Positions 25 through 51,700 of a DNA stretch of 64,000 bases are shown in pieces; position 1 is the first letter of the stretch, and each line of letters opens with the position of its first letter. A program made the translations under genes and the position numbers. The DNA lies in contig CDMY01000821.1 in the NCBI GenBank assembly GCA_001179505.1, positions 124,001 to 188,000 of the forward strand, in the 5' to 3' direction. The stretch is from Vitrella brassicaformis CCMP3155. Taxonomy: Eukaryota; Protista; Chromerida. The notes under the pieces were generated by a model. The model saw only the letters and a list, made by a program, of their open reading frames with translations, did not search any database and was not told where the DNA came from.

Positions 25-2755
25 CTAACGCTGGGCTCTCCGCATCTTCTTGTCTCAATGGGCAGGGTAAGCGTTCCCTGCGTGCTGTTGGCGCCTGCCT
101 CTTCAAAAGCAAGCGGCAAGCCACTTGTCTTATTCGTGCTGTCGGCTTCTGCCGGCGGCGGCATCGGCGATGGTTCCCTCTCTGTGCAGTTTCCGCCCTC
201 GTCCGCCGGCGTTTCATGGAATGATTCCTCTCGGCTGGGTGACTGTTCCATCTCGGGAACGGCTCGCGGCACAGGCTGGCCGAACTCGTCGATCAGACTG
301 ACACGTTTCCTGCCCCCGCCCATCTCGGTCACCTCCGGGACGTCTGGCGACGATGGAGCATAGGTGTAAGCCGTCGGTCTCGGCGCCACTTTTCTCCTGA
401 AGAGCTGAGGGCCGCCCTCCGCGAGATCACGGATCCTCTCAGGCTGTGAAGTCAGCCAGAAGCCGCGAATGACTGAACGTTTCTCGTCCTCTGTGCTGTC
501 CCTGCGTCGCGAGCCGTGGGACGGTGGCTTCAGGTTGTTTGTGTCGCTTGGAGGCGTCGACGCGGGATCATAGATGGTGAAGCAGATGGGGTTGAGAAGA
601 ATCGCAGCCCGTGTCGCTGCGATACCATCGCTCTGTGGGTATTCGAGCGCGAAGAGGATCGAGTGTGTCTCTTCATAGAACATCGAGACGACATCGTGGA
701 AATCAAAGCCCTCCCACGGCGCTGTCAGCGGGGCCACCACCAGCTGCATCGTCCGGCCGAGGTAATACGCATACGTCCAGTCGCTTGGCATCTCCAGAGC
801 GATTTCTTCCTCCGAAAGAGCCCCAGTGGTCCCCACGGCCGAGCCACGCACAAGCAGATTATGGATAAAGGCGCAGAGTCCCCTGCATAAGACTGACTTT
901 GCCAGAAGAGCTGCTTTGTAGGCCTCGATTACAATCACGATGTCTCCTTCCCTGCATCAGCACGGAACGAGACATGATCAATTCAGAGGTCGTGAATATG
1001 TTTCGGGTGTCTCGATCTCACCCTTTCAGGACGCCGAATAGGTGCCGCCTCCTGCTCTCCCAGTGGTAGAGCTGTAAGCATATGCGCACTGAGTCGATCC
1101 GATGGCGCAAGAAATAAGTCTTGAGCGCCAAAGCCTTGACAATGTTGCGATCATCCTCCTTCTGCAGGTCGGCCGTGGTGCTGCACGCGAAGCAAGGGAC
1201 AAGTATGACATGGATGTATGGATTACTCACTGACCGATTGGCACACAAGACGACAGCTCGACAATGAGGGCTGTACACTTGTGCTCTGAGACAAGACCAC
1301 ACACTCGATCCATTCGTTCGGCGGAGGGCGGCCATGCACCATGACTAGCCGTCCAGACTGACCTATTCAGATCGGCGTCGTCCATAATGTTCCCCTCAAG
1401 GTAGGTCAGCATGCTCTGATAGGTCGCGGACCTGTACACGCAGGCACACGAGACACATATACTGAGAATGTAAAAAGGAAGCGCTACCTCATAATGCGTT
1501 CAATCGGGTAAGGTGGGTGAGAGTTTTGTATTAAGACAACATGAGCCTGCAGAATCAATTACACCGTTCAATTATCATGCCATGCACTTTCCACGTCTTC
1601 TCTGTTTCTCTTCTCTGTCAGGATGAATGCTGCAATCGGACCTGCACGGGCTGCAGTTGCGATCGAAGCAGCTGGGAAAGGAACGTCAGTAAGTTGTGAG
1701 CCCCAACATTAGATCCCGCCAGCACGAAATGAAACTGGTCCCCCTGCGGGTGGAATTGACGACTCGCATGTCCTCCTCCATGCATCTTCAGAATGCGAAT
1801 CATCTCATTGGTCTGCTCTCACGCCATTGAAGCGCAATGACGCCATACAGTGGAGACACGGATGGGTACTTTCTTTTGCAGCTCACTTGCACTGGAATGA
1901 GAAGCAATGACACAACGATGAATGCACAAATGGCAATTCGGCCTATATCCGTCACAGGCGCAATGTCACTCCCATAGCCAACTGTCGTCTGCACACCACA
2001 CACACATACATACAAACACGAACAGAAGTACTTCCTGCTGGATGCCTTTCAAGCAGCTGACCAAAGTGATAATGATAAAATAGCACATGTCATGAAATTC
2101 CCAGTCAAGAGCATCCCTCTCCACCGCCTGCATGGCTCCAGCAGCGATGTAGATGAGTGCGACGATAGTCAATACGATCTTCATGGACTGCCGTGTCAGC
2201 TCAGACTGGACGTACGAGAAGATACGCGCCAGGCGGAGAATGCGGAGGACGCGCGCCGTCATGAAAAGCTCTACCCAGTACGTCCCTTGCAGGTCCGATG
2301 TGGCGTAGCGCTGGCGAGGGGGACTCAGGACGATGGCCAGCTCTGCAAACGAGGGAAGGATCGTAATGACGTCCAACCACGTGCTGAAAGACGACCAATG
2401 CCGCCTTCTGTCGGTTGCCAGAACAAAACGAATGACAAGATCAAAGACGAAGTAGCCACCAAGAGCAAGATCCAGCAGAAAGAGAGCCTGATCACACACA
2501 TGGCATTCGTGGTGGGGGAAGCCCCTATAAGGGTTCAGGACTCCCTCACGCTCTCACCTCCGAGTTCACATAGGTGCTGATGACGTAGAGGACGCAAGTA
2601 ATACACGAAACGGTCGCGTTGAGGGCATCAACTGGCAGTATGAGCAGGGCCTTGTTGAATGTTGCGAAAGCCGCTGTCTCCTCAGCCTCGGACGCCGCAT
2701 CCTCATCGTTTGATGGGCTGAAGCTGGGATCCACCGGAGAGTCCTGAGCATCCAT
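25..2755 (-). CDS. Ca2+-activated (BK/Slo-like) potassium channel, multi-exon, 3' end runs off the left edge
   Basis: Spliced exons give S1-S6 helices, an S4-like RVLRILRLAR segment, pore HDMCYFIIITL/TTVGYGSDIAP, and RCK-type segments (LEGNIMDDADLNR, DDRNIVKALALKTY, YKAALLAKSVLCRGLCAFIHNLL). A GTGAG donor at about position 24 suggests continuation beyond the window. Confidence 0.9.
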
Positions 2756-2981
2756 GATGATGGGCTGGCCTCACAGAACGTCAGGCTGGAGCCACCACGA
2801 CGGGCTCATGAGACAAAGTATGAGCCAATTTGTCACCAGCGGTAGGCCATCGATGATTCATTGCGGAGGGATGGTGGCAAAGGCCATTGCATTGTAGGAG
2901 AGGACGGAGCTGAGGGTCTCTTGGATCGGGGGAAAACAGGCCCACAGCTCGCACGGTGGCTCGCACGATTCCCGTATTTCG

Positions 2982-5082
2982 ATGCGTAGGGGGTTGGGAA
3001 AGCCGCCAGCTGGCGAGCCGGCGAAAAAGAAACAAAAGGCATCTTCACCAGCTGCTGCCTCGTCGGCAGCGCCCATGTCTTTGCCGCGCCTCTGGGGGGA
3101 CCGCATTCGTGTCGTTCGCCCCTCTCCGTCGCTCACGCCGCCCCAGATCATTGGCCGTCTCGCTGACTTCGCCCAACAGCCGCCGACCAGTAGTGCCGCA
3201 TCGCCGACCAGCAGTGCCGCATCGCAAGGGTCTTACGTCCTGTATTGGATGCAAACGGCTGTTCGAGGACACGAGAATCCTGCGCTCGATGTCGCCTGGA
3301 TGGCGGCACGACAGTTGGGCCTGTCGCTAGTCATCTGTTCGTGTCTACTGGCGGGACATCCTCATGCAAACGACCGACGGTAAGATCTGAGCCTCACAAG
3401 CCTCAAAGCATCAACCCACCACTCGTTCGTTGTGCTACTATGTGTGTGACCAGGTGGTCATTCCTGCTTGAGGGCCTGCGCGACGCCGGTGACGAGTTGG
3501 AGAGGCGTGGAGGAGCCCTCTTCCTCCACATCCAGCGCTCGGGCGGTTCGCCCGCCCACTCATGGCAGGGGATGCTGTCGCTCGCCCGCGGCGCCACCCT
3601 CACAGTGACGGAGGACATGCCAGTCGAACCGCACAGGGGCTGGACATTGGCCATCACAGAGGCGCTCAACAGCCGCCAGCAAGAGCACGACAGCGGTGTG
3701 ATCGACCTTACGGACGAGCGCGACACCGTCGGCTCATCTGGCGGGGGCCTCTGGGCGGTCGACACAGCGTGTGTGGTGCCGTGCATCCAAGTGGGCCGGG
3801 CCTACGAGCGTGCATTCGCGTTCAGATCGGCGACGGCCGGCTATCGGTCGGCAGCCATGGGGATGCTTCAGCGGTACAATAAGTTCGACGGCATTGGGCT
3901 GGGCGATGTGACGCTGAGTGAGGGGCAGGTGGGGTGGATGGATGGCTGGGACGTCATCAAGGCCAACTCACAGACACTCAGCAGCATAGCTGAAATCGTA
4001 GCAGACACGCCTGTTGATCACACGGTCAGCACAATGACACACAGACATGCAGCCTGCAGGTATCTCTTTGTTTGCGTGTGTCATCCATCCATCATATTCA
4101 GGTGCCCCCTTCCCCTTCGCTGAGCGGTGGCGCTGCGGGCTACGCCCAGTGGGAGGTGTTCAAGAGCTCAGGACGGCTGAAGAATTACGCCAAGACGCGG
4201 AACGACATCCTCACTCCGGATGGCGTGTCGAGACTCAGTCCTTATCATCACTGGGGCATGGTGAGAACGACCATAGAATGGGCAGAGGGATATATGCCAC
4301 AGAGGATCCATCCATCCATGTATCCATCCATCCATCCATTTGTGTCTTCATACCCTGCCTGCTTGTGTAGGTGTCTCCCTTCCGCATCGCGCGTGAGGGC
4401 GCGGCCGTCTACAAGTTTCAGGATGAGTTCCTGGTCTGGCGGGAGCTGGCCTACAGCTTCTGCCACTACCGGTATCCCCAGCACTCAACGCTCGATGGGG
4501 TACCCAAGTGGGCGCGTGACACGCTGCAGCAGCACGCGGCAGATGCACGCGAGGCGCTGCCGTTGGCGCAGCTGGAGGGGGCGTCGACCGGCGATCCTGT
4601 GTGGGACGCTGCGCAGCGGTGCCTCAACAGACACGGAGAGCTGCACAACAACATCAGGTCAGATGTGCGCAGTGAGTCAGGCACAACAAACCATGCAAAT
4701 GCTGTCAACGTTATGTGTTTGCAGGATGACTTGGGCGAAGGCGATTCTGAGGTGGGCACCGACGCCCGGCGATGCGCTGCAGTGGGCCATCCATCTCAAC
4801 CACAAATACGCCCTCGACGGATGCGACCCATGCTCATACGCCGGCATCCTCTGGTGCTTCGGACAGGTGCGACAGACATACAACCACTGAAAACACAAAT
4901 CAGTCGTAAGTCTACTTGGACTGTGTATGTCTGTGATTCAGTTCGATGGCCCCAAGTCACCGGAGCGGCCCATTTTTGGCCGTGTGCGCGGAAGGCCGAC
5001 CAGCATCCACAACGCCAAGCTTGCCGGCTACCGGCGCATTGTGGATCGGGACACGTATGGGGCGGCCAGGCGGACCCCGTGA
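2982..5082 (+). CDS. Class II CPD DNA photolyase, multi-exon
   Basis: Motifs YVLYWMQTAVRGHENPAL, SRLSPYHHWGMV/SPFRIARE, KFQDEFLVWRELA, TGDPVWDAAQ, GELHNNIR/MTWAKAILRW and KYALDGCDPCSYAGILWCFG are typical of the class II photolyase FAD domain. Stop TGA at 5080-5082 after splicing. Confidence 0.92.
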
Positions 5083-15419: not shown

Positions 15420-15699
15420 TGATGATATAGAGCACGACGGTGAACTGTTGCGGCCGGCCGAGCTCAGCCGCCCCAGCGAACGAAGCATCGCTGGCGTGAC
15501 GATGGGATGGATGAATAGACGCCTCTTCTGCAGCAGAGCAGCACCGACACGAGGATGAGTCTTAAGAGCAGATGACGGCGTTGTTGCAACTCAATCGATG
15601 CTGGGAGCCCAAAGCGCGCGGCTGCCGCTTCTTACGTTGGCAGATCTCCGCGTTCACTTCTCTGCAAGCTTAGCTCGCATGATCGCGCCATTTCTCGCT

Positions 15700-17110
15700 T
15701 TTTTCGTCACTTTTTCCGTCCCCCGACAGAGTGTCAGCCACGCTCGGGCGCCCCATCGTGCGTGGCTGTTGTGAGGGTATGCGCCGGCATGCAGCGTTTC
15801 GTGCGCATGACGTGTGTATCTCTTGGGTTCTGTGCTGCGTGTAGGGCTTGATTGCGTCGACAAGACAAGCAGCCGGCGGCTTGTCTGCCCTCTCAGAGGA
15901 GGCTGATCAAGCAGCTGGACAGATCGATGGCGTCTGTTGGGAGGTGCGTGTGCGCGCGTCACAGACAAATGCAATTGATACAAACGCACATCATATCTGT
16001 ATCGTCTGCAGGCTGCCCAGTGTGCTGCTCATTCTGTCCGTCGGCCTGTCACCGCTGCCGTCCTCGGCCGCCTTCGTCCGGCCCGTCCGACTGACACACA
16101 CAGCGCCCATCCCACTGACACACCCAGGGCCATCCCACCGTGCACCGCAGCCCACCCCGACGTCACCTGGAGGAATGCCGGTGACCGTGCTGAGTGCGGG
16201 AGGAGGATTCAACTTGAACAAGCATCTCAGCCAGCGGGATATCGGCTTTGCCAGCATTGGGGCGTTCCTCCTCATCCTCTGGTGGCAGATCCTCGGTTCC
16301 TTGGCGGACCTCGCGCCGCCCATAGTGGAGCAGTACATGAGCGCCATTGACATGAGGTAGCGTACGACGAGGCCGCATCATACGTAGATGAGAAGTATGT
16401 GTGTCTCTGTGTCATGAGGTCCGAATGTGTGTGCGTGCGCATGCAGCTGGATGAGTGGTCCTGAGATCGTGTCCAAGTTGGCGAGCGTCGAGGTCGAGAT
16501 TGACGCCGTTGACGCGCCTGATCAGCTCGCCGTGATCGCAGTGCTGGCGTCCAGTGTTATGTACTCGTGGAACAAGATCCCAGAGGCCGAAACCATACCC
16601 AGAGACCGTAAGTAGCGATGGCTGCATGGGATGGATGGATGGATGGATGCGCACGGCCAGACACACACGCACACGGACTCATTTGTGTTTGTATGTGATA
16701 TCAATCAATCCATCCATCAGGTGACCTGCCGCCGGATGAAGAGCTGCTCGAGAACAGCCGGAGAAGACCAGCCGCAGGAAAACAACAGAAACCGCTTAGG
16801 CTGCGGGATCTGAGTGTGCGGGATCTCGGATGCATATGTCTGGGCACGGCCGCTGGCGGTTTTTTCGACTCCGGCATCGACGCTCTCGTCTACAGCATGG
16901 TCGGTGATGCCGTCGTGGTGAGCGCGCGTGGGCTAGTGCTGCTGTTTTCCTTGTTCTGGGTGGTCTTCTGGTGGAAATGGCTGACTGACTGATGGATGGA
17001 TCCGTGGGTCGGGTGCAGCAGAGCTTTTTATACGTACAGGTCAGGGAGGGATGTAGTCACTGAACAGGTCGGGAGTTTTTATACACTACGCATGGCGTAT
17101 TGCATGGAAT
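15700..17110 (+). repeat. About 1.4 kb direct segmental duplication, copy 1
   Basis: Colinear similarity with 24230-25675, from upstream CGCTCGGGCGCCCCATCGTGCGTGGCTGTT through the gene to downstream TACAGGTCAGGGAGGGAT..CGCATGGCGT.TTGCATGGA. Confidence 0.9.
15927..16992 (+). CDS. Plastid-targeted small membrane protein of unknown function, copy 1 (4 exons)
   Basis: Spliced MASVGR/LPSVLLILSVGLSPLPSSAA-FVRPVRL.. gives a signal peptide + Phe + Pro/Ser/Arg-rich transit peptide. It has an internal TM (FASIGAFLLILWWQIL) and C-terminal TMs ending FWVVFWWKWLTD*. All three junctions are GT..AG and in frame. Confidence 0.75.
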
Positions 17111-18423
17111 ACTTGACAGGCAAGATGCCGCTTCTTGAGATAGGGGGAGAGATGACGCAAAGAGGGTCTGTACAGGCATATGTCTGCACAACCTGTAAAC
17201 GCTAGGGTTTGTAATGGCCGATCGGTAGAATGTGTAGAAGGGAGAAGCAGACATCTAGCAAGCAGTCAAACTCATGTCCCTCAAAAAACCGCAAATGGCA
17301 AGGAAGCTGTGACTCAAAGTGTGTGTTCACAGATATGCAGTCGTTCTCACACAGGCGTCTACATAAGTGTTTCCATGCATCGACCAACCCGACACATACG
17401 CGCGCAAACACAAACATACCACGGACAGAAGGGAGGAAAGCAGCCAGACGTGTGCAGAATCCATCCATCCATCCATCCACCACACACAGACAGCCACACC
17501 AGCCACAGACAAATACGGTGCAGGGAGGGAGGGGGGAGGGAGAAGGGCAGGCAACCCAAACTTTTTTGTATTTTGTCCTTTCTTTTCGCGGCTTTAAACG
17601 TGTTCCTTGTTTGTTGGACGTGTTTTAAAATTTCTCCTCAATTTTTTATTTCTTGGCGTTGTGTTAGATATTCTTCTGCGGTTTGCCTTTTTTCTATATT
17701 GGGACGTCTTAGAAAATGCGCGCGCACCGTACAGGCCTCAAGATGCGCGATCAGGGGAGGATCCTTGGACGGGGTGCGACAAGCGCAAGCCAGAGCGCAA
17801 TCTCGCCCCTCCAGCACCAAAGAAACTGCACGGTGAGTCACATAGACACTCTCAGTGAGCCACATGCATGTCTCTGCTTGTCCTCCTGTCTGGCTCACTT
17901 GTGCGTGTCTCTCCAGTTGGGAGTCTCTTTGTGCGCAAACTTTGCTTTGATGCGAAATTTTGCTTGGCGTCCCTTCCCTATCGCCTCCCATTATTCGTTC
18001 GTCGAGCCGCGTTAGGCGTGTACATGCCTCAAGAAAGGTACGCGCGTGGCTTAGGACCCCGGGCGAGGGTTTTTCCCATTGCAATGGAGCGCCCATGAAG
18101 GCCGCTGCCGTGCTCATCTGAGTCCGAATGAATGGGGCGGGGAGGGTTGCGAATTGGGTGAATGCGGTTGGTGTGCAGCAGTGGTCGGCAGACGCACCCA
18201 GACATTCACACACACGGAATTCGATGAGCCCTTTAGGCCTGGGGCTGGGAGGCCGGGGAATGACTGGTGGTGTGATGGGCTGTCTGTGTACGGCGGTTGG
18301 GGGGATGGCCTTGCGTGTGTGAGAAGTGGGTATGCCGCAGGGAGGGTATCGATGGGGTCAGTGCGGTGAAGTGGTGAGAAATGCAATTTGGTGGAAAGGG
18401 CGAGTAGCGAAGCAGGGCGTGTT

Positions 18424-21340
18424 GGGGAAAGAGAGAGACAAGACACAAGACACAAGACTTCCCGCGTTTTAAACAGAAGACTGGGGTGCAGTAAAAAAAA
18501 GGCGGGTTACAATGTCCGGGGGCAGAGAGAGGAGGGCACCGACATTGTAATTCGCCGTGCACACCCGTCCGGATATAAAATGTAGGCAGCGATCATCCAA
18601 CCATCCATCCAACCATCCATCCAACCATCCATCCAACCAGCCAGCAGTGATAAGCAGGTGGCCCTGAACCACACACACACACACACACGTTCGTTCATAC
18701 GTTTGCGCCTTCAAGTGTGTCTCTGTCTGTCTGTGTGTGGCTCTCCTCTCCTCTCCCCCCTCTCCACTCACCTGTCAGTCAATGAATGGGTCGATGTGTC
18801 GTGACCAAGAAGGAAAGGGACAAGAGACAAGACTTCCCGCGTTGTAAATAATTGCAGAGACTGGAGTTGTGCGAAGAAAAAAACCCTCTCTCGCGGCGGA
18901 AAGGCCAGCCGCTGAGAGAGGGGGTGCACACATTACTCCAAGAATATAAAATGTAGGCAGCGATCGATCAGGAGAAAGCACATCCTCCATCCCCCCATCG
19001 ATGGATCGAGTGACTCGCGCCCTGAACACACCATAGACAGACAGACAGACAGACACACGCAGCCAGCAACCAACCAACCAAAACGCCGTGAGTGAGTGAG
19101 CANNNNNNNNNNNNNNNNNNNNNNNNNNNNNNNNNNNNNNNNNNNNNNNNNNNNNNNNNNNNNNNNNNNNNNNNNNNNNNNNNNNNNNNNNNNNNNNNNN
19201 NNNNNNNNNNNNNNNNNNNNNNNNNNNNNNNNNNNNNNNNNNNNNNNNNNNNNNNNNNNNNNNNNNNNNNNNNNNNNNNNNNNNNNNNNNNNNNNNNNNN
19301 NNNNNNNNNNNNNNNNNNNNNNNNNNNNNNNNNNNNNNNNNNNNNNNNNNNNNNNNNNNNNNNNNNNNNNNNNNNNNNNNNNNNNNNNNNNNNNNNNNNN
19401 NNGGAAAGAGAGAGACAAGACACAAGACACAAGACTTCCCGCGTTTTAAACAGAAGACTGGGGTGCAGTAAAAAAAAGGCGGGTTACAATGTCCGGGGGC
19501 AGAGAGAGGAGGGCACCGACATTGTAATTCGCCGTGCACACCCGTCCGGATATAAAATGTAGGCAGCGATCATCCAACCATCCATCCAACCATCCATCCA
19601 ACCATCCATCCAACCAGCCAGCAGTGATAAGCAGGTGGCCCTGAACCACACACACACACACACACGTTCGTTCATACGTTTGCGCCTTCAAGTGTGTCTC
19701 TGTCTGTCTGTGTGTGGCTCTCCTCTCCTCTCCCCCCTCTCCACTCAACCTGTCAGTCAATGAATGGGTCGATGTGTCGTGACCAAGAAGGAAAGGGACA
19801 AGAGACAAGACTTCCCGCGTTGTAAATAATTGAAGAGACTGGAGTTGTGTGAAAAAAAACCCCTCTCTCGCGGCGGAAAGGCCAGCCGCTGAGAGAGGGG
19901 GTGCACACATTACTCCAAGAATATAAAATGTAGGCAGCGATCGATCAGGAGAAAGCACATCCTCCATCCCCCCATCGATGGATCGAGTGACTCGCGCCCT
20001 GAACACACCATAGACAGACAGACAGACAGACACACGCAGCCAGCAACCAACCAACCAAAACGCCGTGAGTGAGTGAGCACACCTCTGTCGACGAATGAAT
20101 GCCTGTGTGAGGGACTGACTGACTTACCGCGAGAGGGGCAATGCATTCTGTCAAATCCACGGCCATCTGATCTTCTTAGTCCGGTACGAATGAACGCCGT
20201 GACGACAACTACACAAAGACCCGACTCCCCACACTCAGGCTCGCCGACCATCTATCCATCCATCCATCCAGCAGTGATGAAGAGGTGGCCCTGAACCACA
20301 CACACACACACACACATGTTCGTTCACACGTTTGCGCCTTCAAGTGTGTCTCTGTCTGTCTGTGTGTGGCTCTCTTCTCCTCTCCCCCCTCTCCACTCAC
20401 CTGTCAGTCAATGAATGGGTCGATGTGTCGTGACCAAGAAGGAAAGGGACAAGAGACAAGACTTCCCGCGTTGTAAATAATTGAAGAGACTGGAGTTGTG
20501 TGAAAAAAAACCCCTCTCTCGCGGCGGAAAGGCCAGCCGCTGAGAGAGGGGGTGCACACATTACTCCAAGAATATAAAATGTAGGCAGCGATCGATCAGG
20601 AGAAAGCACATCCTCCATCCCCCCATCGATGGATCGAGTGACTCGCGCCCTGAACACACCATAGACAGACAGACAGACAGACACACGCAGCCAGCAACCA
20701 ACCAACCAAAACGCCGTGAGTGAGTGAGCACACCTCTGTCGACGAATGAATGCCTGTGTGAGGGACTGACTGACTGACTTACCGCGAGAGGGGCAATGCA
20801 TTCTGTCAAATCCACGGCCATCTGATCTTCTTAGTCCGGTACGAATGAACGCCGTGACAACTACACAAAGACCCGACTCCCCACACTCAGGCTCGCCGAC
20901 CATCTATACATCCATCCATCCAGCAGTGATAAAGAGGTGGCCCTGAACCACACACACACACACACACACACATGTTCGTTCATACGTTTGCGCCTTCAAG
21001 TGTGTCTCTGTCTGTCTGTGTGTGGCTCTCCTCTCCTCTCCCCCCTCTCCACTCACCTGTCAGTCAATGAATGGGTCGATGTGTCGTGACCAAGAAGGAA
21101 AGAGAGAGACAAGACACAAGACACAAGACTTCCCGCGTTTTAAACAGAAGACTGGGGTGCAGTAAAAAAAAGGCGGGTTACAATGTCCGGGGGCAGAGAG
21201 AGGAGGGCACCGACATTGTAACCCGCCGTGCACACCCGTCCAAATGTAAAATGTAGGCAGCGATCATCCAACCATCCATCCATCCAGCCAGCCAGCAGTG
21301 ATAAACAGGTGGCCCTGAACCACACACACACACACACAAA
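18424..21340. repeat. Higher-order tandem repeat array (module A about 345 bp, module B about 650 bp; order A-B-gap-A-B-B-A)
   Basis: Anchors AAGACTTCCCGCGTT and AT(A/G)TAAAATGTAGGCAGCGATC recur six times. B period is about 652 bp (19818 to 20470). A diverged partial copy lies at about 21700-21870. Confidence 0.93.
19103..19402. other. Assembly gap (300 N) inside the tandem array
   Basis: Run of N. True copy number of the array is unknown. Confidence 1.
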
Positions 21341-23489
21341 CACACCTCGACATTCAATTTGTCGACATTCGCTTGTGTTTGGTCTCTCCGTCTCTTGTTA
21401 GCTTACACGTATGTGATACACTGCCTAAAACCGCCATCTGCCCTTGATTACCGACAGACGATCGGCATCAGTCAGTGGTGCTCCGGGTGTTGATGAGGCC
21501 TTCTCTTCAGCCACACCTCCAAGTCTGAAGCAGAAACATGTCAGTGTGTGTGTGGGTGTATTATGCATCCTCTGCGCATGGGTGGGTGGCTTCCTGCTTA
21601 CTTGATGTAAGTAGAGGTGAGCCGCGCGTAGGTCCCTGCACTTGTTCGGTCCTGCCGTCGAGATTGGTAGTTAAGGTAGGTGTGAGAGCCAACGGTCATC
21701 CATCCATCCAGCGATCGAATGACTCGCGCCCTGAACACATCATAGACAGACACGCGCAGCAACCAAAACGCCGTGAGCACACCTCTGTCGATACCTCTGT
21801 CGATGCGTGTGTGGGGGACTGACTGACTTACCTCGAGAGAGACAGTGCATTCTGTCAAAAGCACGGCCATCAGGAGAAAGAATCAAACTTCCATCATCTG
21901 CACACAAGCATGCCGACAGGGCACAGTGACATCACCACAGCAATGAAACGGACCACGCAGTAATCCTCGAATATCATCCACCACATATCGACCACCGCAG
22001 CCAACCAAAAGAAAAAGAGATATGACACGTGGACTCACCTGAAAAGATGTTTGAGTTTGAAGACAAAAGAAGGCGTCCCGGCACTCAGCTGACGCCAGAC
22101 AGGTGTCAGGTAGTCTCCACCCATTCAGCAGAAGAAAGGGCGCCAGCAACCGGCTGAGGCACTCGCGGCACACCACACAAGCCAACGACCACTCACCAAG
22201 GGAGGAGGGAGGCTCAGGCTGATGTCAGCGCCTGACGGGCGGACGGTCAGGGGTGGTCAGGTGGACTCGTCCTCTGCGCAAACGGCGAGCAGCGGGGGAT
22301 GTGTGGGCCTCGGGCGGGTGGCGACCGACCTCTCCCGCCGAAAAATGAGAAGAAACGAAGGAGATGTGAGGCGAACAGTGGGAAAGAGGACAGCTGGCGT
22401 GGAAACTGTCCGATGCTTCCTTTTCTTGAAAAAGCCGTCTCGAGACGGCGAGAATTCAAATCCTCGCCGCGATTCTCGCCACAAGCTCGCGTGTTTTTTT
22501 CTGAAGCGCTCCTTGTTGGTAACGCCACCCTCTCCTTTTCATCATTGTCCTCAAGCTGTCCATGTCAAGTCTGCCCACAGGCAGCCCGCATCTGATTCTG
22601 GCGCGTCTTCATACTGCAGTGAAGTTGCACTGCAATTAAGGATGGAGTGGTCGTCAGCCACCCCAATGGCGCCTCCCATCGATCTGCTGCACATACAGTA
22701 CAACCTAGGCCTTCTGGCAAAGAGGAGACCAGGTTGGGTCTTCACTCACAGTCAGTCCATGCACCTCTCAACAAACAAGCAATCCCTTCGATCTGTGCAC
22801 ACCACATGGACCCTTAATTGCCCTTTCCATCCATCAAGGTCACAGACAGACCCATGCACTCTACCTACTCACACGTATGTACGTATCAAAGGCAAGGAAG
22901 GGACGGACATGCGTCACACGACTGACTGGCCATGGCGTGTCTGTCCACCGCAATTAACGTGTGTTCGTGAATGAATGAAGACCACACCGGCCGCACACTC
23001 ACAGTCCGCAAACACAGCTGGACCAATGCAAACCGCCCGGACTACGGCCGAGAGAAAGACAATAAATACAGCTGATCGAGCTGGCTATCGTCATGTCATC
23101 ATTCACTTATTTATTTCAGGAAGAAAAGTCTGCACCAAAGACAGAGCAGCCGTCAGTGCACAGTTGAGTCAACTGTCTATACGTATGTGTGTGTGTGGTC
23201 TTCTCCCTCGTCGCACTTACAGTACTTCTCTTGACGCATTTGCCCGTCGAGCGATGCGCGGCGGACGGACGTATTTTGGCGCGCACACACGCTCAGGCTG
23301 GTTGAACTTCACCATGCACACACCGCTGGCCATCGCCGCATGAGTAGGCAGCCCTTGCACAACTGCTCCCCAAGATCTGATCGGTCACACACACACACGA
23401 CAAGCAAGAACACACACCGATCAGATCAGACAACACCACCCGGCTCGCGAATGAATCGCCTCGCTCTTTCTCTTTCTGCCCGCCTAGCC

Positions 23490-24005: not shown

Positions 24006-24229
24006 GCAGTGCACACGCACCGGACACACAGACAGACAGCAGGGATCTGAGCGAGAAGAGCCTTCTGATGGTCGGTGGCCTTGCTGATCTGTGCGTGGCG
24101 CCTCCCCCTTGCACGTCTAAGCTCGCAGGGTTTGGAACCCTGCATTAGAACAGGTGGCGCGTCAAACCGCTAAACACAATAACCAAACCAAACCAAACCC
24201 GCAAGGGGAGTGGGCCGAAGATCCGCTTT

Positions 24230-25675
24230 CGCTTTTTCTTTTGCTTTTTCGTCCCGCCGCACGTGTTGGCGACGCTCGGGCGCCCCATCGTGCGTGGCTG
24301 TTCTGAGGGTATGCGCCGGCATGCAGCGTTTCGTGCACATGACGTGTGTATCTCTGGTTTCTGTGCTGCGTGTAGGGCTTGATTGCGTCGACAAGACAAG
24401 CAGCCGGCGGCTTGTCTGCCCTCTCAGAGGCCCGCTGAGTGGTCAAGCAGCTGGACAGACAGATCGATGGCGTCTGTGTGGAGGTGCGTGTGTGCGTGTC
24501 ACAGACAAATGCAATTGATACAAACGCACATGTGTGTGTGGCCGCATCAATTGCGTACATTGTCTGTCTGCAGGCTGCCCATTGTGCTGCTCATTCTGTC
24601 CGTCGGCCTGTCACCGCTGCCGTCCTCGGCCGCCTTCGTCCGGCCCGTCCGACTGACACACACAGCGCCCATCCCACTGACACACCCAGGGCCATCCCAC
24701 CGTGCACCGCAGCCCACACCGACGTCACCTGGGGAAATGCCGGTGACCGTGCTGAGTGCGGGAGGAGGATTCAACTTGTACAAGCATCTCAGCCAGCGGG
24801 ATATCGCCTTTGCTGGCATTGGATCGTTCCTGCTCGGGATCTACGTGGAGCTCCTCTACCTCGCAGACGCCGTTGACGTCAGGTAATGGACGAGGCTGTA
24901 TTGTGTTTGTGTAATGAAGTCCGTATGTGTGTGCGTGTGCAGATCGATGAGTGGTCCGGATATCGTGTCCAAGTTGGCGAGCGTCGAGGTCGAGGTGGAC
25001 GCCGTTGCCGCGGCTCCTCGGCTCGCCGTGATCGCACTGCTGGCGTCCAGTGTTATGTACTCGTGGAACAAGCTTATCCCAGGGGCCGACACCATCCCCA
25101 GAGACCGTAAGTAGCGATGGCTGCATGGGATGGGTGGGTGGATGGATGGATGGATGGATGCGCATGGACAAACAGACACGCACACGGACCCATTTGTGTG
25201 TGTCTGTGATATCAATCAATCAATCCCTCAGGTGACCTGCCGCCGGATGTACAGCTGCTCGAGAACAGCCGGAGAAAGGCAGCCGCAGGAGAACAACAGA
25301 AACCGCTCAGGCTGCGGGATGTGAGTGTGCGGGATGCAGACTGCATGTGTCTGGGCTCGGCCGTTGGCGGTTTTTTGGTCTGGGGCGTCCAGCTTCTTCT
25401 GCTTGTTCTGGCAACCACAGTCGACGCATCCGTGAAAGTGGTCAGTGCACTAGTGATCGCCAATCTCACGTTCTGGTTCGTCTTCTGGTGGAAGCGGGTG
25501 GCCGATGACTGACTGACGGACGGACGGACGGACGGACGGGTGGGTGGGTGGGTGGGTGGGTGAGTAGAGAAGGTCGGGTGTGCAGCAGAGTTTTTATACG
25601 TACAGGTCAGGGAGGGATCTAGTCACTGAATAGGTCGGCTGTTTTAGGTACGACGCATGGCGTGTTGCATGGATA
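24230..25675 (+). repeat. About 1.4 kb direct segmental duplication, copy 2
   Basis: Matches 15700-17110 including the promoter region, introns and 3' flank. Confidence 0.9.
24467..25512 (+). CDS. Plastid-targeted small membrane protein of unknown function, copy 2 (4 exons)
   Basis: Same exon structure as 15927-16992: MASVWR/LPIVLLILSVGLSPLPSSAAFVRP.., SGPDIVSKLASVEVEVDA.., DLPPDVQLLENSRR..FWFVFWWKRVADD*. Confidence 0.75.
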
Positions 25676-25775
25676 CACGACACGGAACATGCAGCACACA
25701 TCTCCTCTGCAAGTTTAGCTCGCAGAAAGCAATCGCTTTGGCCGCGTTTCTGCCGCTATATTTCACTGTGGCACG

Positions 25776-27177
25776 ATGTCCCGCCCCGAGGGTGACCGTG
25801 ATTACCGGCGAGATCGTGAAAGAGGTGATTCGCGGGACGACAGGCGGCGTGACGACGACAGGGGCAAGCGCGAGCGAGACGATGATGATGATTCGAGGGA
25901 CAGGGACAGAGAGAGGGAGAGGCGGCGGGACGATGACGACTACCACGACAGGCGGCGGGACAGGGACAGAGGGCGTGACAGGGACAGAGACGATGACCGC
26001 CGAAGAACCGACAGATACAGGTATGTGTCTGTGCGTGGGTGGGTGGCTGGGTGGATTGATAGATCTGACACACATATGTATGTGTCCTTCCGTCAGAGAT
26101 CGGGATTACGACCGGGACAGGGACAGGGACCGGTGAGTGAGCAGCCACGCCCAGACAGCACAGCACTACCAGACAGGGAGGATGGATGAGATTATTGATG
26201 CGCGCGTGTGTGTGTGTGTGTGCGTTGTCAGGGACAGGGATAGGGACAGGGATGACCGCCGGCGTGACCGAGACTACGACGACAGGGACGTAGACAGACG
26301 GAGGTGAGCACCACGAAGCACCACCTAGAAGAGCCTTCATTGCCCTGTGTGTGGATGGTTTCACCCATGCAGGGACAGGGACAGAGACCGTGACAGGGAC
26401 AGAGACAGGCGAGATCGGGATAGGGACTCATACAGGTGTGCATACCCGTCTGGGTGTAAGAATGTTACGTACCTACTTCTGCGACCGCTTTTGTCATTCA
26501 GGCGTGGCCGGAGGGACGATGACGACGACCGAGACGACGACAGATACAACAGAGGTACGCACAGCAGGGAGGGCACCACACACACACACACACACTCTCA
26601 CCAACCAAACGCTCTGTGTGTGTCGGTGTGTTTGCCCATCCATCAGATGAGGACAGGAAGCGTAAGCGTCGCCACGACAGCGATGATGACGACGACGATG
26701 ACGACCGGCGCGACCGGAAGGACCGGCGCCGCGACTCGCCCAAAAAACCCACTACCAATGCCAATGCATCGACGTCCAAGAAACCGGTCAAGCCCAAGCG
26801 CCACAAAAGCGATGATGACATGTCAATCGACAGCGATGGTGACGACGCCAAAAAGAAAAAGAAAAACAAAGTCAGCGGCCGGCGAGAGACAGACAACACA
26901 TGGATGCACGAGTGTGGCTGTGGATGGATGTGATGTGTGTGGTTACTTACAGGACAGTGACGATGATGCGTCGGATGACGATGAGGACAAGGACGGCGAC
27001 TTGACGGAGGAGCAGCTGATGCAGAAGCTGATGGGTTTCGGCAACTTCGACACGAGCAAGGGCAAGGACCACAGCAAGTCAGACCTCGGCGGGGTCAACA
27101 AGAGGACCAAGCGCAAGTACAGGCAGTACATGAACCGGAAGGGCGGATTCAACAGACCCCTCTCGCCCGTCTTCTGA
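25776..27177 (+). CDS. SNRNP27: U4/U6.U5 tri-snRNP 27 kDa protein, RD-repeat N-terminus, multi-exon
   Basis: C-terminus [41 protein letters not shown] is the conserved SNRNP27 (DUF1777) domain. The N-terminus is Arg/Asp dipeptide repeats. Confidence 0.93.
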
Positions 27178-44422: not shown

Positions 44423-45268
44423 CTGACCAACTCTTATGTGTGTACATTAATTATGTGTGAATGAGGCTGCTGGCCGTGAATATGTGTCTGTGTGTGAGGG
44501 GGTGGGTGGGTGGGTGGGTGGTGGGCTGTGTATAGGTTCATGGATGGATGGATGGATGAATGTGTGGACGAGATGGTGTGTATGCGTGGTGCGTTGATGA
44601 ATCAATCCTCAGTCTCCGTAGATGTATGCAAGAAGTCAGCACCCCTTTTTTCTCTCACAAAGCACTAACTCTGACAGTGTATGTGTGCAAGGGTTCCCCC
44701 GGTGAGCGCCAGCCACGGTACCGCCTCTGCTGATGAGATGGATCACAGCAGAGGAGCTACGTCAGCCGGCACACAGGGAAGGAACACCCACACGCACGCT
44801 GTACGTCCACACACTCACGCAGCCAACCAGTCATTGCAGACAGACAGTTTATGAGCATCCATCCATCAGTTGCGCCGGCGCGGGTCTCTCATGTCTCTCA
44901 TGGGCCCAATTGCTGCGGCTCCAGGAAGAGTGTGTGAGAAAGGTGGGCGAGGGGGTGGTCCCCCGCTGCCTTTCTCACGCACACCTCCTGGAGGCACTCC
45001 AGAATCGGCACCACGCATGGCCGCCCGACCGGCCGACAGCGAATCATTGGGGGCTCAGTAGTTCCACCCATACGTACAAAAGCTCCCGTCACTCAGTGGA
45101 AAAGAATACCCTTCATGGTCGACTCGATATGAGGCAGACAGACACAGGCAGGCAGGCAGACAGACACAGGCAGGCAGGCAGACAGTCACAGGCAAGTGCC
45201 CTATGCATCCGCCACTGTACAGTGCACAGTGCACACACACCGCTGCGTCCGTTCGGGTGTCTGTCGCG

Positions 45269-48718: not shown

Positions 48719-51700
48719 TCACGGGACGAAAGAGCTCCTGATGTTCTCCCAGTGCACCGCGCCACCACTGCCCGCCACCCACTCCACCCACCGCCGCCAC
48801 ATGGTGTCGCGCTTGCTGGACGCACAAAGGATGCACACATACAGGATGGATGAGACGAGCCAATCACAGAAAGACATCTGATTGCTGGTGTGGTGTGGGT
48901 GCGGTGTGCACTATAGCGCTGCCTGTCGCCATGGCATGGCTACACACGCAATTACCTGAGTGTGTCCCGATGCCCCACCACGATAATGCCCCTCCGTGCC
49001 CGAGTAATGGCGACATTCATCCGTCGTGGGTCGGCGAGGAACCCCACCCGACCGTCGCTGTTGCACCTCACCAAAGAGACCAAAATGAGGTCCCTTTCGT
49101 TGCCCTGGAAACCATCCACTGTGTCGATGGCCAGACCCCCGCTGGCGGCCGTCTCCAGGCCGCCCAGCACAGAACCGATCTCTCGGGAGAGGAGCTGACG
49201 CTGGGCGCGGTAGGGCGTGATCACCCTGCACACAACACAACGACCATGCATGAAATGACTGACGTCCGCTGCCTTGTTTCTCTCTCTCTGGCTTGTGTTA
49301 ACCCGATCTGTGCCGGGGTGACATGTTGGCCTTTGAGGAGTCTGCCGACGATGGCGGCCACTACTTTCGCCTCGCGGTCGTTCCAGAAGGAGCATCCCTC
49401 CAGCCCTTCTGAGGCTGGCGGCTGGTCGCTGCTGGTCTCGTCACTCCCACCGCCGTCCGCCTCCGCGTCGCTGGCAGCATTGACGATGGGCAGGGCGGCC
49501 TCCTCGCTCATCTGCTCGGCGACGTGCTCGATGTCGGTGGCGGTGGACTGGGGCGCGCTGCTCACATCGATGAAGCACGCCTGATGCACACGGACACAAA
49601 GAAAAGAACAAAGAAGGGACAAGAGAATGTGACACAATGAATGCACTGCCCCATGAGCCGTTCGTTTGTTCGTTCGTTCGACCCCCCTCTCACACGTAAG
49701 ACATCGTTTGTGTCAGCGGTTTTGGTGGTGGGTGATGGCCAGGGGAAGCCCACTATGGGCGGCAGGGAGGAGTCGGGGAGGGCGTTCTTAAGCTGCTCCT
49801 TGTAGAAGTGCTGATTGGGCCACCACGAGAGGGACGAGTGCATCCTGCGCTGGTGGTCCAGCATCACGAAACAGTCGTCAGACGGCGACAATGACGCCGA
49901 CAGACGCTCGAACAGGCTGACCGAGAGACCTACACACACACAAACACAGTATTATGTGTTGTGTGCCCGGTATGTTGCCGACCTCTCTGTGTGGCTTCTC
50001 TGCTGATGACGGTTGGCGGCAGCTGGTTGGCGTCGCCGATGAGCACAAGCTGCCGGCACTTCCTCGCCAAAGCGACTAGTGTGGCGGGCTCCGTGCTCTG
50101 GGTGCACTCGTCAACCAGCACGCGCTCAAACTCAGCGCCCTGGAACGAAGTCCCACCCGCACCCACACAAGTGCTCACCACCACCTACACACGCACGCGC
50201 CACACAGCACAAGCAAGAACGACACACAGACCGGTTGGTTCTTGTGCTGTGTGGTGCCTGTCTTTGGTCTCTCTCTGCTCTGTGCGCTGCCTTGCCTGGT
50301 GTTGTCTGATGGCGTCTTTGACGGCTTGTGCGTCGGTCGGCGTCTCATCTGCGTCGATGCCCACACGGATGCACCTCACACCAAGCCGCCGCATGGTCGC
50401 CACAAGGTTGGCCGCCGCTGCATTCGAGTCGGCAACGGCTAGCACATTCGCTGAAAGGATCAAATGAGCATACCGCACACGGGGGTGTGGTGCATTCATT
50501 GTGGCCCTGTCTGTCTGTTCCTCTGGCTCTCCCTCACTGTGTGGGTCAATGATGGTCCATGCGAGGACGATGGCCGCTGCTGTGTGGGTCTTGCCGGTGC
50601 CTGGGGGACCCTGTATGATCGTGAGTCTCTGCCTGAGTGACTTCTCGAGCGCATCCCGCTGTCCACCAACAAGCGACGTTATCGTGATCCCCTGAACGAA
50701 CCAACAAACACGAGGAAGGCAATGCAATGGGCGGGAAGTGAACAAGTGAAGGGCCATCAGCTCTCCACCCATGTGTCTGTATCTTCCCAATCCATCGCGT
50801 CCACCCCCTTGAGCCCACCGCCCAGATGCTGCCGCACCACACCCGGTGGACCCCTTCCCACCAGCAGGCCTCGCATCTCAGTCGTGAAGCTGTACGAATC
50901 GCGGTGTGGGAACTGGCACCATGGACGGCCCAGAAGCGACACAGATGCGGCGGGCGCCGACTCATCGACCTCTGCTGCATGGGCGTGGGCGTGTTTGTGG
51001 CCGTGTCGCAACGCCGCTGCGCGGTCTGCGAGTTTCTCTGACCGACTCTTCTTAGCCCTGGCGGAGGGGTAATGGGCGTGAAGAATGCGGCCCAGACGGG
51101 CCTGCAGAGTCAGCGATCTGCCGACGGCATTCACACACAGAGACAGTGTTTCTCATCCGCGAGTGTTGATGATAGAAGTGTGTCAGAGGGCACCTGAGAG
51201 CCCTCAGCGACCGCAGGTAAGGGATCATGGACACGTGCAGCGGCGCCACTCTGATGAACTCGTGGCCCTCCTTGTCGATCCACTCCTTCCGCTCGCCAGA
51301 CGCCACGTACCGCCCCACCCTCAGCCACTCGGCAGCGGCCTCCCGGCCCTCTCCAGAGGCATACTTGAGATACTCTCGCGGAATCCTCTCCATCTCGTGC
51401 TGGTTGGTCAGGCGGTCCACCAGCTGCACCAGCATCACGACTTCGTTGCTCTCGAGACGCGACCAGGCCATCTCAAAGGATAGGCCGAAAGACCTCAGCC
51501 GCCTGAAGGTGGGGCGCTTTGATGGTTTGGCCACGCTGCTCCCGCCCTCGTAGGTTGACGGCTCATCTGATCCGTTGATGATGCCCGTCTCGGCGAGCTG
51601 GTCACTGTTGATGAATTGACGCACGACGCCAAGGTGGTACTCGTAGGCCGCGTCGTTGGCAGCTGATGGTGAGACAGCCCCGCCACGCGGCAGCCCGATC

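Follow-up and report, generated by a model that had tools for sequence, protein, structure and literature searches.

Rolling-circle transposons of the HINE/Helentron type carry subterminal inverted repeats of 12–15 bp that lie 2–4 nt from the 5′ end and 38–60 bp from the 3′ end, together with a 3′ palindrome 8–35 bp from the end, variable strings of T at the boundary, and microsatellites or tandem repeats in the interior (PMC4067079). Asymmetric terminal inverted repeats and hairpins are known from Helitron2 elements, along with ATTTT ends and joined ends (PMC5148889). The Vitrella genome paper reported 18 kb of Helitron sequence and 13 Mb of unclassified repeats. Here, we analyzed a tandem array of palindromic modules in Vitrella brassicaformis CCMP3155 (contig CDMY01000821.1, positions 124,001 to 188,000 of the forward strand); this stretch of 64,000 nucleotides is referred to as the window, and all positions are given in its own numbering. 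An earlier note on this DNA had taken the array for a candidate cluster of small hairpin RNA genes of the RNA polymerase III (Pol III) type 3, with a repeat derived from a MITE (miniature inverted-repeat transposable element) or a Helentron as the alternative. We assign a probability of about 0.45 to the reading that the array is a non-coding repeat derived from a mobile element, with Helitron2/Helentron-like head-to-tail junctions, and not a set of dedicated small-RNA genes.

Anatomy of the modules

On the plus strand the modules follow each other in the order A1-B1-gap-A2-B2-B3-A3, with three modules of type A and three of type B. The array and its parts are listed below, with the evidence in brackets.

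18424–21345, no strand assigned: the whole higher-order tandem array (identity of A1B1 to A2B2 and of B2 to B3)
18446–18596, minus strand: module A1, a nested palindrome whose inner stem carries CC>TT (alignment, folds)
18821–18967, minus strand: module B1, with T7CTT as its T-run (alignment, folds)
19103–19402, no strand assigned: assembly gap of 300 N inside the array (matches of its edges to the B3-to-A3 interval)
19423–19573, minus strand: module A2, identical to A1 (alignment, folds)
19799–19944, minus strand: module B2 (alignment, folds)
20450–20595, minus strand: module B3 (folds; z = −8.0 for the DNA fold)
21117–21267, minus strand: module A3 (folds; z = −6.2 for the DNA fold)
21124–21139, minus strand: shared 16-mer AACGCGGGAAGTCTTG, with other copies at 18453, 18828, 19430, 19806 and 20457
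21164–21171, minus strand: run of T8, which reads A8 on the plus strand, with the inner hairpin on one side and the outer 3′ arm on the other; other runs are at 18493–18500, 18877–18883, 19470–19477, 19852–19859 and 20503–20510
21244–21265, minus strand: shared 22-mer GATCGCTGCCTACATTTTAYAT with a TATA-like end, with the other five copies at 18573, 18944, 19550, 19921 and 20572

All six modules that the earlier note had described were recovered at their positions, and the flanks that they have in common are far from a chance occurrence: the 22-mer GATCGCTGCCTACATTTTAYAT has six minus-strand copies in the window where shuffled sequences led us to expect 0, and the 16-mer AACGCGGGAAGTCTTG has six copies against 0.5 expected. 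A search with an nhmmer profile of the six modules found no seventh module in the 64 kb. The homology between A and B units breaks off sharply at the GATC end of the 22-mer. The identical blocks flank a core of ~ 100 nt, and alignment revealed that the cores of A and B are unrelated to each other, in agreement with the unrelated inner hairpins of the earlier description. The inner stem of A has 16 bp and a loop of 24 nt; in A3 its arms (21172–21187 and 21212–21227) pair perfectly, while A1 and A2 carry the CC>TT change. The inner stem of B has 17–19 bp with two single-base bulges and a loop of 5 nt (the inner hairpin of B3 lies at 20511–20551).

Around the inner hairpin lies an outer stem of 12–13 bp, which is specific to each type: its arms are GGACGGGTGTGCA and TGCACCCCAGTC in A3, and GGAGT(AA)TGTGTG and CACACAACTCC in B3, with z-scores of −2.6 to −8.2 against shuffles. 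The common flanks are themselves imperfect inverted repeats, since GCTGCCTACATTTTA pairs with TAAAACGCGGGAAGTC and the 16-mer pairs imperfectly with the 22-mer. Because the flanks pair with each other, the whole module of ~ 135 nt is a nested palindrome on both strands, layered from the inside out into inner stem, outer stem and a weak pairing of the common flanks. When folded, as the earlier note had proposed, each module formed one long nested hairpin, on either strand and as RNA or DNA, with z-scores down to −8.2. The T-run sits inside this palindrome as a one-sided bulge on the minus strand in six of six modules; it is T8 in five of them and T7CTT in B1. Runs of seven or more T or A are rare elsewhere, as 11 of the 15 overlapping matches in the window fall in the modules.

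The earlier note had also claimed that the outer arms of A and B differ in a matched way. The outer stems are indeed real and specific to their type, but the match is not one of compensatory changes in a fixed register. Relative to the common GGA and CCAGTCT, the outer stems of A and B lie in different registers, and they are therefore two independent palindromes and not a single helix preserved by compensatory substitutions. Compensatory changes across copies, which would be looked for in precursors of microRNAs (miRNAs) or in hairpins that yield small interfering RNAs (siRNAs), were absent: modules of one type are 97–100% identical, and between the types the registers are shifted. Copies across the array are 99.4–100% identical, and for this reason the array carries almost no comparative information.

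Palindromes of other sequence were seen elsewhere in the window. A nested palindrome of ~ 75 nt lies at 44918–44994 (CTCCAGGAAGA-GTGTGTGAGAAAGG ... CCTTTCTCACGCAC-ACCTCCTGGAG) and is unrelated in sequence to the array; a hairpin of 16 bp with one mismatch (GCGCCACACAGCACAAG ... CTTGTGCTGTGTGGTGC) and a loop of 27 nt lies at 50197–50257. A small GC palindrome (GCCGTCTCGAGACGGC) followed by T5 is found at 22434–22453 on the minus strand, ~ 1.1 kb from the array, and has the same strand and the same appearance of a palindrome with a T-run.

Candidate Helentron-like junctions and copies elsewhere in the genome

The anatomy described above can be compared with the ends of HINE/DINE-1 and Helitron2 elements if the T-run is taken as a junction. 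Each module would then be the head-to-tail junction of two non-autonomous rolling-circle units of the Helitron2/Helentron type (HINE/DINE-1-like). On the minus strand, the end of a unit would consist of a subterminal inverted repeat (GGACGGGTGTGCA in A; GGAGTAATGTGTG in B), then a 3′ palindrome, and then the T-run, and the next unit would start 0–2 nt later with the complementary subterminal repeat (TGCACCCCAGTC in A; CACACAACTCC in B). Such a junction would yield the inner hairpin, the T-run as a one-sided bulge, and an outer stem in which the change of one arm from subfamily A to B is accompanied by that of the other. Measured in this way, with putative termini, the arms have 12–13 nt, the 3′ arm would start 0–2 nt beyond T8, and a distance of ~ 65 nt (A) or ~ 53 nt (B) would separate the last base of the 5′ arm from the end of the T-run. 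The sequence of a 3′ palindrome followed by a variable T string is present, in that the hairpin abuts T8, or T7CTT in B1. The likeness to HINE/DINE-1 and Helitron2 elements would comprise inverted repeats of 12–13 bp, one near the start of the unit and the other ~ 65 nt before its end, a 3′ palindrome beside a terminal T-run that varies in length, an interior rich in microsatellites, and the tendency to form tandem arrays. The 651-nt unit from B2 to B3 would be a complete unit with matching ends; the microsatellites and intron- or exon-like fragments in the interior of the units are what captured or decayed host sequence would give. Unequal crossing-over could have made and homogenized the higher-order A/B array (99–100% identity) and shuffled the ends of A and B.

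The family has further members in the genome, in other sequence contexts. Copy numbers were estimated from the contigs of four DNA sequencing runs by summing the depths of all similar contigs (at least 90% like for hairpin A with its right flank), with the lowest neighboring contig assumed to represent single-copy depth (92 in run X1 and 57 in run X4); the estimates are rough, with some bins inflated by microsatellites. Together with alternative junctions, contig depth indicated roughly 20–100 further genomic copies. Summed contig depth was 8861 in X1 for hairpin A and ~ 1400–3900 for B. As assembled, the left flank of A is present at ~ 2–3 copies, the B module with the spacer before it at ~ 17–30 copies, and hairpin A with its right flank at ~ 80–100 copies. 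Contigs of other copies diverge from the local sequence at precisely the T8 boundary (21163/21164), and one of these continues on the minus strand with GCACACTCGT, which is complementary over 10 bp, with one G·T, to ACGGGTGTGC, the arm upstream of hairpin A. Since a complementary arm again follows T8 in another copy, the nested palindrome is a property of the family. In another context the 22-mer adjoins unrelated sequence (loose end of a contig at 19549), and in run X3 a B module is joined to an A-type neighbor (loose end at 20593).

We favor the mobile-element origin because the palindrome runs through the flanks on both strands, as RNA and as DNA, because every module has its T-run placed between inner and outer stem, because of the multi-copy depth, the contig breaks at the T8 boundary and the 22-mer beside unrelated sequence, and because no protein homolog, Rfam family or transfer RNA (tRNA) was matched. 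The MITE- or Helentron-derived repeat, which the earlier note had held as its second choice, fits better than its RNA genes, given the multiple copies, their other contexts, and a geometry that matches the end features of Helentrons and HINEs. Some of the observations that the note had named as speaking against RNA genes were also made in part, namely copies in other contexts and the absence of covariation.

Several points weigh against the Helentron-like origin. The inner stems of the array have 16–19 bp, in contrast to the 5–10 bp reported for HINEs. The alternating A/B units are chimeric between T-runs, with a B-type 5′ arm and an A-type 3′ arm, and recombination is therefore needed. The termini differ between A and B while the adjoining 22-mer and 16-mer are identical; identical blocks beside different termini are the reverse of the usual transposon pattern, and this suits genes with a shared promoter. 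Complementarity extends weakly past the putative subterminal repeats into the flanks, which a foldback element or an RNA stem would explain equally well. Furthermore, the edges of the array lie in microsatellites and not at a T-run, and the copy numbers depend on the assumed single-copy depth. Neither a RepHel partner nor an empty site or TT target turned up in the material compared, which was the 64-kb window and contig summaries with 30-nt contig ends. We consider the array a candidate member of the Helentron/HINE group.

A different kind of mobile element may be considered for the same palindromes. In a cut-and-paste foldback element or MITE, the flanks would be long imperfect terminal inverted repeats recognized by one transposase, and A and B would be families with different interiors. 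MITE families with common ends and different interiors are frequent. Like foldback elements and MITEs, the modules are short palindromes that are non-coding and multi-copy; each forms an inverted repeat over its whole length, and the identity declines from the center outward. However, inspection of the sequence found no target-site duplication or direct repeat flanking any module, and despite the 99–100% identity of the copies, only ~ 11 of 15 positions agree between the flank repeats. The left flank of A is low-copy in contrast to the high-copy hairpin with its right flank, and the asymmetry of the T-run is left without an explanation. Due to these differences, we regard a foldback or MITE origin as quite unlikely.

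The Pol III type-3 genes that the earlier note had inferred are, in our assessment, very unlikely. In this case, minus-strand genes would use the 22-mer as promoter, start at the base of the inner hairpin and stop in T8, so that U-tailed hairpin RNAs of ~ 50–65 nt would be produced in two or more sequence types. The layout reported in the note, with a TATA-like box, a hairpin, a T-run and common flanks, is accurate: 16 nt (A) or 20 nt (B) lie between the end of the TATA-like TTTTATAT and the inner stem, a distance that would suit a TATA-directed start at the hairpin base, and T7–8, rare as such runs are in the window, follows directly after the stem. In addition, different hairpins are set between identical blocks on the promoter side and downstream, T8 marks the exact end of the high-copy part of the A module, and at the loose end at 19549 the 22-mer precedes a third, unrelated sequence. 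U6-like type-3 genes and engineered short hairpin RNA (shRNA) cassettes resemble this layout, with a TATA-like box ~ 25 nt before the hairpin and T7–8 directly after it; in contrast to them, the array has a pairing arm downstream of the T-run. We know of no natural family of the box, hairpin and T-run form. The outer 3′ arm beyond the supposed terminator pairs with the stretch between box and hairpin, both in A and B and in one more member of the family, and because it pairs with sequence upstream of the hairpin, the terminator model leaves this arm unexplained. Upstream, conservation does not extend past the 22-mer; Rfam and tRNA-type signals are lacking, and compensatory changes are absent, as described above. 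The CC>TT change of A1 and A2 and two flank mismatches are compatible with G·U pairing only on the plus strand, contrary to genes on the minus strand. It would take long odds for the 22-mer to be a compact lineage-specific promoter of tens of natural "shRNA-like" genes with interchangeable hairpins, in which the arm after the T-run is a relic of how members arise.

The earlier remark that CC>TT in two A copies leaves the strand unsettled was borne out by the folds. Plus-strand folds are 3–7 kcal/mol more stable, through the G·U-compatible CC>TT of A1 and A2 and two positions of the flank pairing. In the other genomic family member, one mismatch favors the minus strand, opposite to the four local mismatches that favor the plus strand. 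The G·U asymmetry therefore points both ways.

Rfam, which the earlier note had proposed to search, gave no match at gathering score and nothing relevant at E-values up to 5; the best E-value, 0.26, was to miRNA models on microsatellite spacers. ARAGORN found no tRNA genes, and Rfam detected no small nuclear RNA gene in the window. Neither a protein domain nor a homolog was found for the array, and no transposon protein was found around it. Among the sequencing runs that carry array sequence, none is recorded as RNA, and the four best-matching runs behave as DNA, with long contigs and with the flanks covered too. The flank motif returned a single bacterial contig in the metagenome scan, a chance match in a relaxase-like region, and scans of the bacterial and archaeal genome collection gave 0 matches. 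A search of the literature on Vitrella repeats, hairpin RNAs, introners or Helitrons yielded no paper on these subjects and no mention of the present repeat.

Two known RNA classes were rejected on inspection: small nucleolar RNA (snoRNA), as there is no C/D pair and no ACA/AGA at the right place, and spliced-leader RNA, as a common exon with a GT donor and an Sm site is missing. Four marine sediment metagenome runs of 2025 (X9–X12) contain ~ 30% of the sampled words of the array. Near-identical sequence thus seems to be present in the environment, and with it the organism or a close relative.

Spacers, array layout and genomic setting

The spacers between the modules contain pieces that resemble introns and exons; two intron-like segments with splice-like signals are listed below.

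20943–21056, minus strand: intron-like segment of 114 nt (CAG|GTGAGT ... (GT)n GGTTCAG|G), repeated after modules
20650–20782, minus strand: second intron-like segment, of 133 nt (GCG|GTAAGT ... TGTGTTCAG|G)

A short exon-like piece with an ATG (13 codons) precedes the 133-nt segment. The minus strand of the spacers carries CAG|GTGAGT three times, G|GTAAGT three times and TTCAG|GGC nine times, and all nine occurrences of the latter in the window are in or beside the array. The intron-like pieces match the style of the introns in the neighboring SNRNP27 gene (80–130 nt, microsatellites, and (GT)n before YCAG|G). The modules fall in exon-like pieces of 249–258 nt, no long reading frame passes through them, and no protein relatives were found for three translated probes of spurious open reading frames (ORFs) that cross modules. 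The spacer pieces may stem from genes, as fragments that were captured or have decayed, or they may be the exons of a transcript that is non-coding.

If they were such exons, the hairpins would lie in the repeated exons of a spliced non-coding RNA polymerase II transcript of the minus strand, or in a plus-strand transcript, and a Dicer-like cut would release small RNAs; the locus would be a polycistronic source of hairpins or siRNAs, and might serve to silence its own repeat family. We consider this unlikely. The splice-like signals and the agreement of the 114- and 133-nt pieces with the SNRNP27 intron style are in its favor, as are extended stems that reach 28–32 bp and the greater stability of the plus-strand folds. 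Tandem clusters of hairpins or snoRNAs in repeated non-coding host genes, such as C19MC and SNORD116, exist in primates, and the array resembles them in combining a structured RNA element with repeated exon- and intron-like pieces. In those clusters, however, the RNAs are intronic and belong to known families with expression data, whereas here the palindromes lie in exon-like pieces. Moreover, three runs that share the sample or species label (X16–X18), whose type is not on record, are nearly without array words; should they be RNA, an abundant long transcript would be absent. A conserved one-sided bulge of 8–10 nt is unusual for Dicer substrates, the splice-like signals may have been inherited from captured or decayed gene fragments, and an insertion of 1 nt (near 19743) has changed one of the donors.

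The same pieces could instead derive from the 5′ region of a gene, with promoter, hairpin-forming 5′ exon, intron and ATG exon, which was locally amplified and is decaying as inert, satellite-like DNA. The exon/intron-like layout including the 13-codon ATG exon, the surrounding 10 kb without coding genes and the array edges in microsatellites all agree with such an origin. It fails on the two unrelated nested palindromes with the same placement of the T-run, and on the tens of further copies with a preserved outer stem, and we give it little credence.

At the level of the array, the blocks A1B1 and A2B2 share 99.6% identity, and the units B2 and B3, which repeat with a period of 651 nt, share 99.4%. 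A CT-rich tract bounds the array at the left and a (CA)n tract at the right. The 60 nt left of the assembly gap recur, ending at 20079 and 20730, and the 60 nt right of it recur, starting at 18426 and 21097. In the fully read interval from B3 to A3, the left edge of the gap thus corresponds to position 20730 and the right edge to 21097. These points are 366 nt apart, and therefore the 300 N hide at least 366 nt, or 366 + k × 651 nt; this fill presumes continuity across the gap. B3 to A3 is the sole B-to-A interval that was read through. The 977-nt spacing from A to A includes the 300 N, and a "period" of this length is an artefact of the estimated gap length. Contig depth suggests that B units are probably undercounted in the assembly.

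The window has ~ 57% G+C, is rich in microsatellites and contains intron-bearing genes, and the array sits in ~ 10 kb without recognizable coding genes. On one side, ORF translations point to a putative PARN-like gene. The features on the other side are as follows.

21690–21920, minus strand: outlying diverged copy of the spacer piece that follows B modules, 87% identical and without a module (identity; multi-copy by depth)
25776–27177, plus strand: SNRNP27 gene (Pfam PF08648, E = 5e-27)

SNRNP27, which Pfam confirmed for the stretch 26347–27177, has an N-terminal part that is long and RD/RS-like; its short introns, at least six in number, are filled with microsatellites, and the gene served as the local reference for intron style. 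By contig depth, the right flank at 21345–22000 is multi-copy (~ 2–12× the lowest contig), with contig breaks at 21791, 21967 and 21981, and the array therefore lies inside a larger repeated landscape.

Direct repeats of ~ 1.4 kb (15695–17128 and 24229–25692), which are 85–89% identical with insertions and deletions, bracket the gene-poor region, and a further similarity of ~ 35 nt (CTCTGCAAGYTTAGCTCGCA) is located just outside each of them, at ~ 15658 and ~ 25705. The pair looks like an old segmental duplication of the intergenic region between PARN and SNRNP27. We rejected a reading as long terminal repeats, as TG..CA ends are missing and no transposon protein lies between the two copies.

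Implications for Vitrella repeats

The array is a real structure and most likely a transposon-derived tandem repeat. If this holds, it calls for caution, since a layout of box, hairpin and T-run would then have arisen without an RNA gene. If discrete RNAs existed, they would constitute a notable new small-RNA gene family, and "shRNA-like" genes under a common 22-mer promoter would represent an endogenous class of small hairpin RNAs not described in alveolates. If the array is instead derived from a mobile element with Helitron2/Helentron-like junctions, it would be a so-far unclassified chromerid repeat whose odd look, with two unrelated hairpins between the same flanks, results from joined transposon ends, and it would aid in assigning a share of Vitrella's 13 Mb of "unclassified repeats" to a class.

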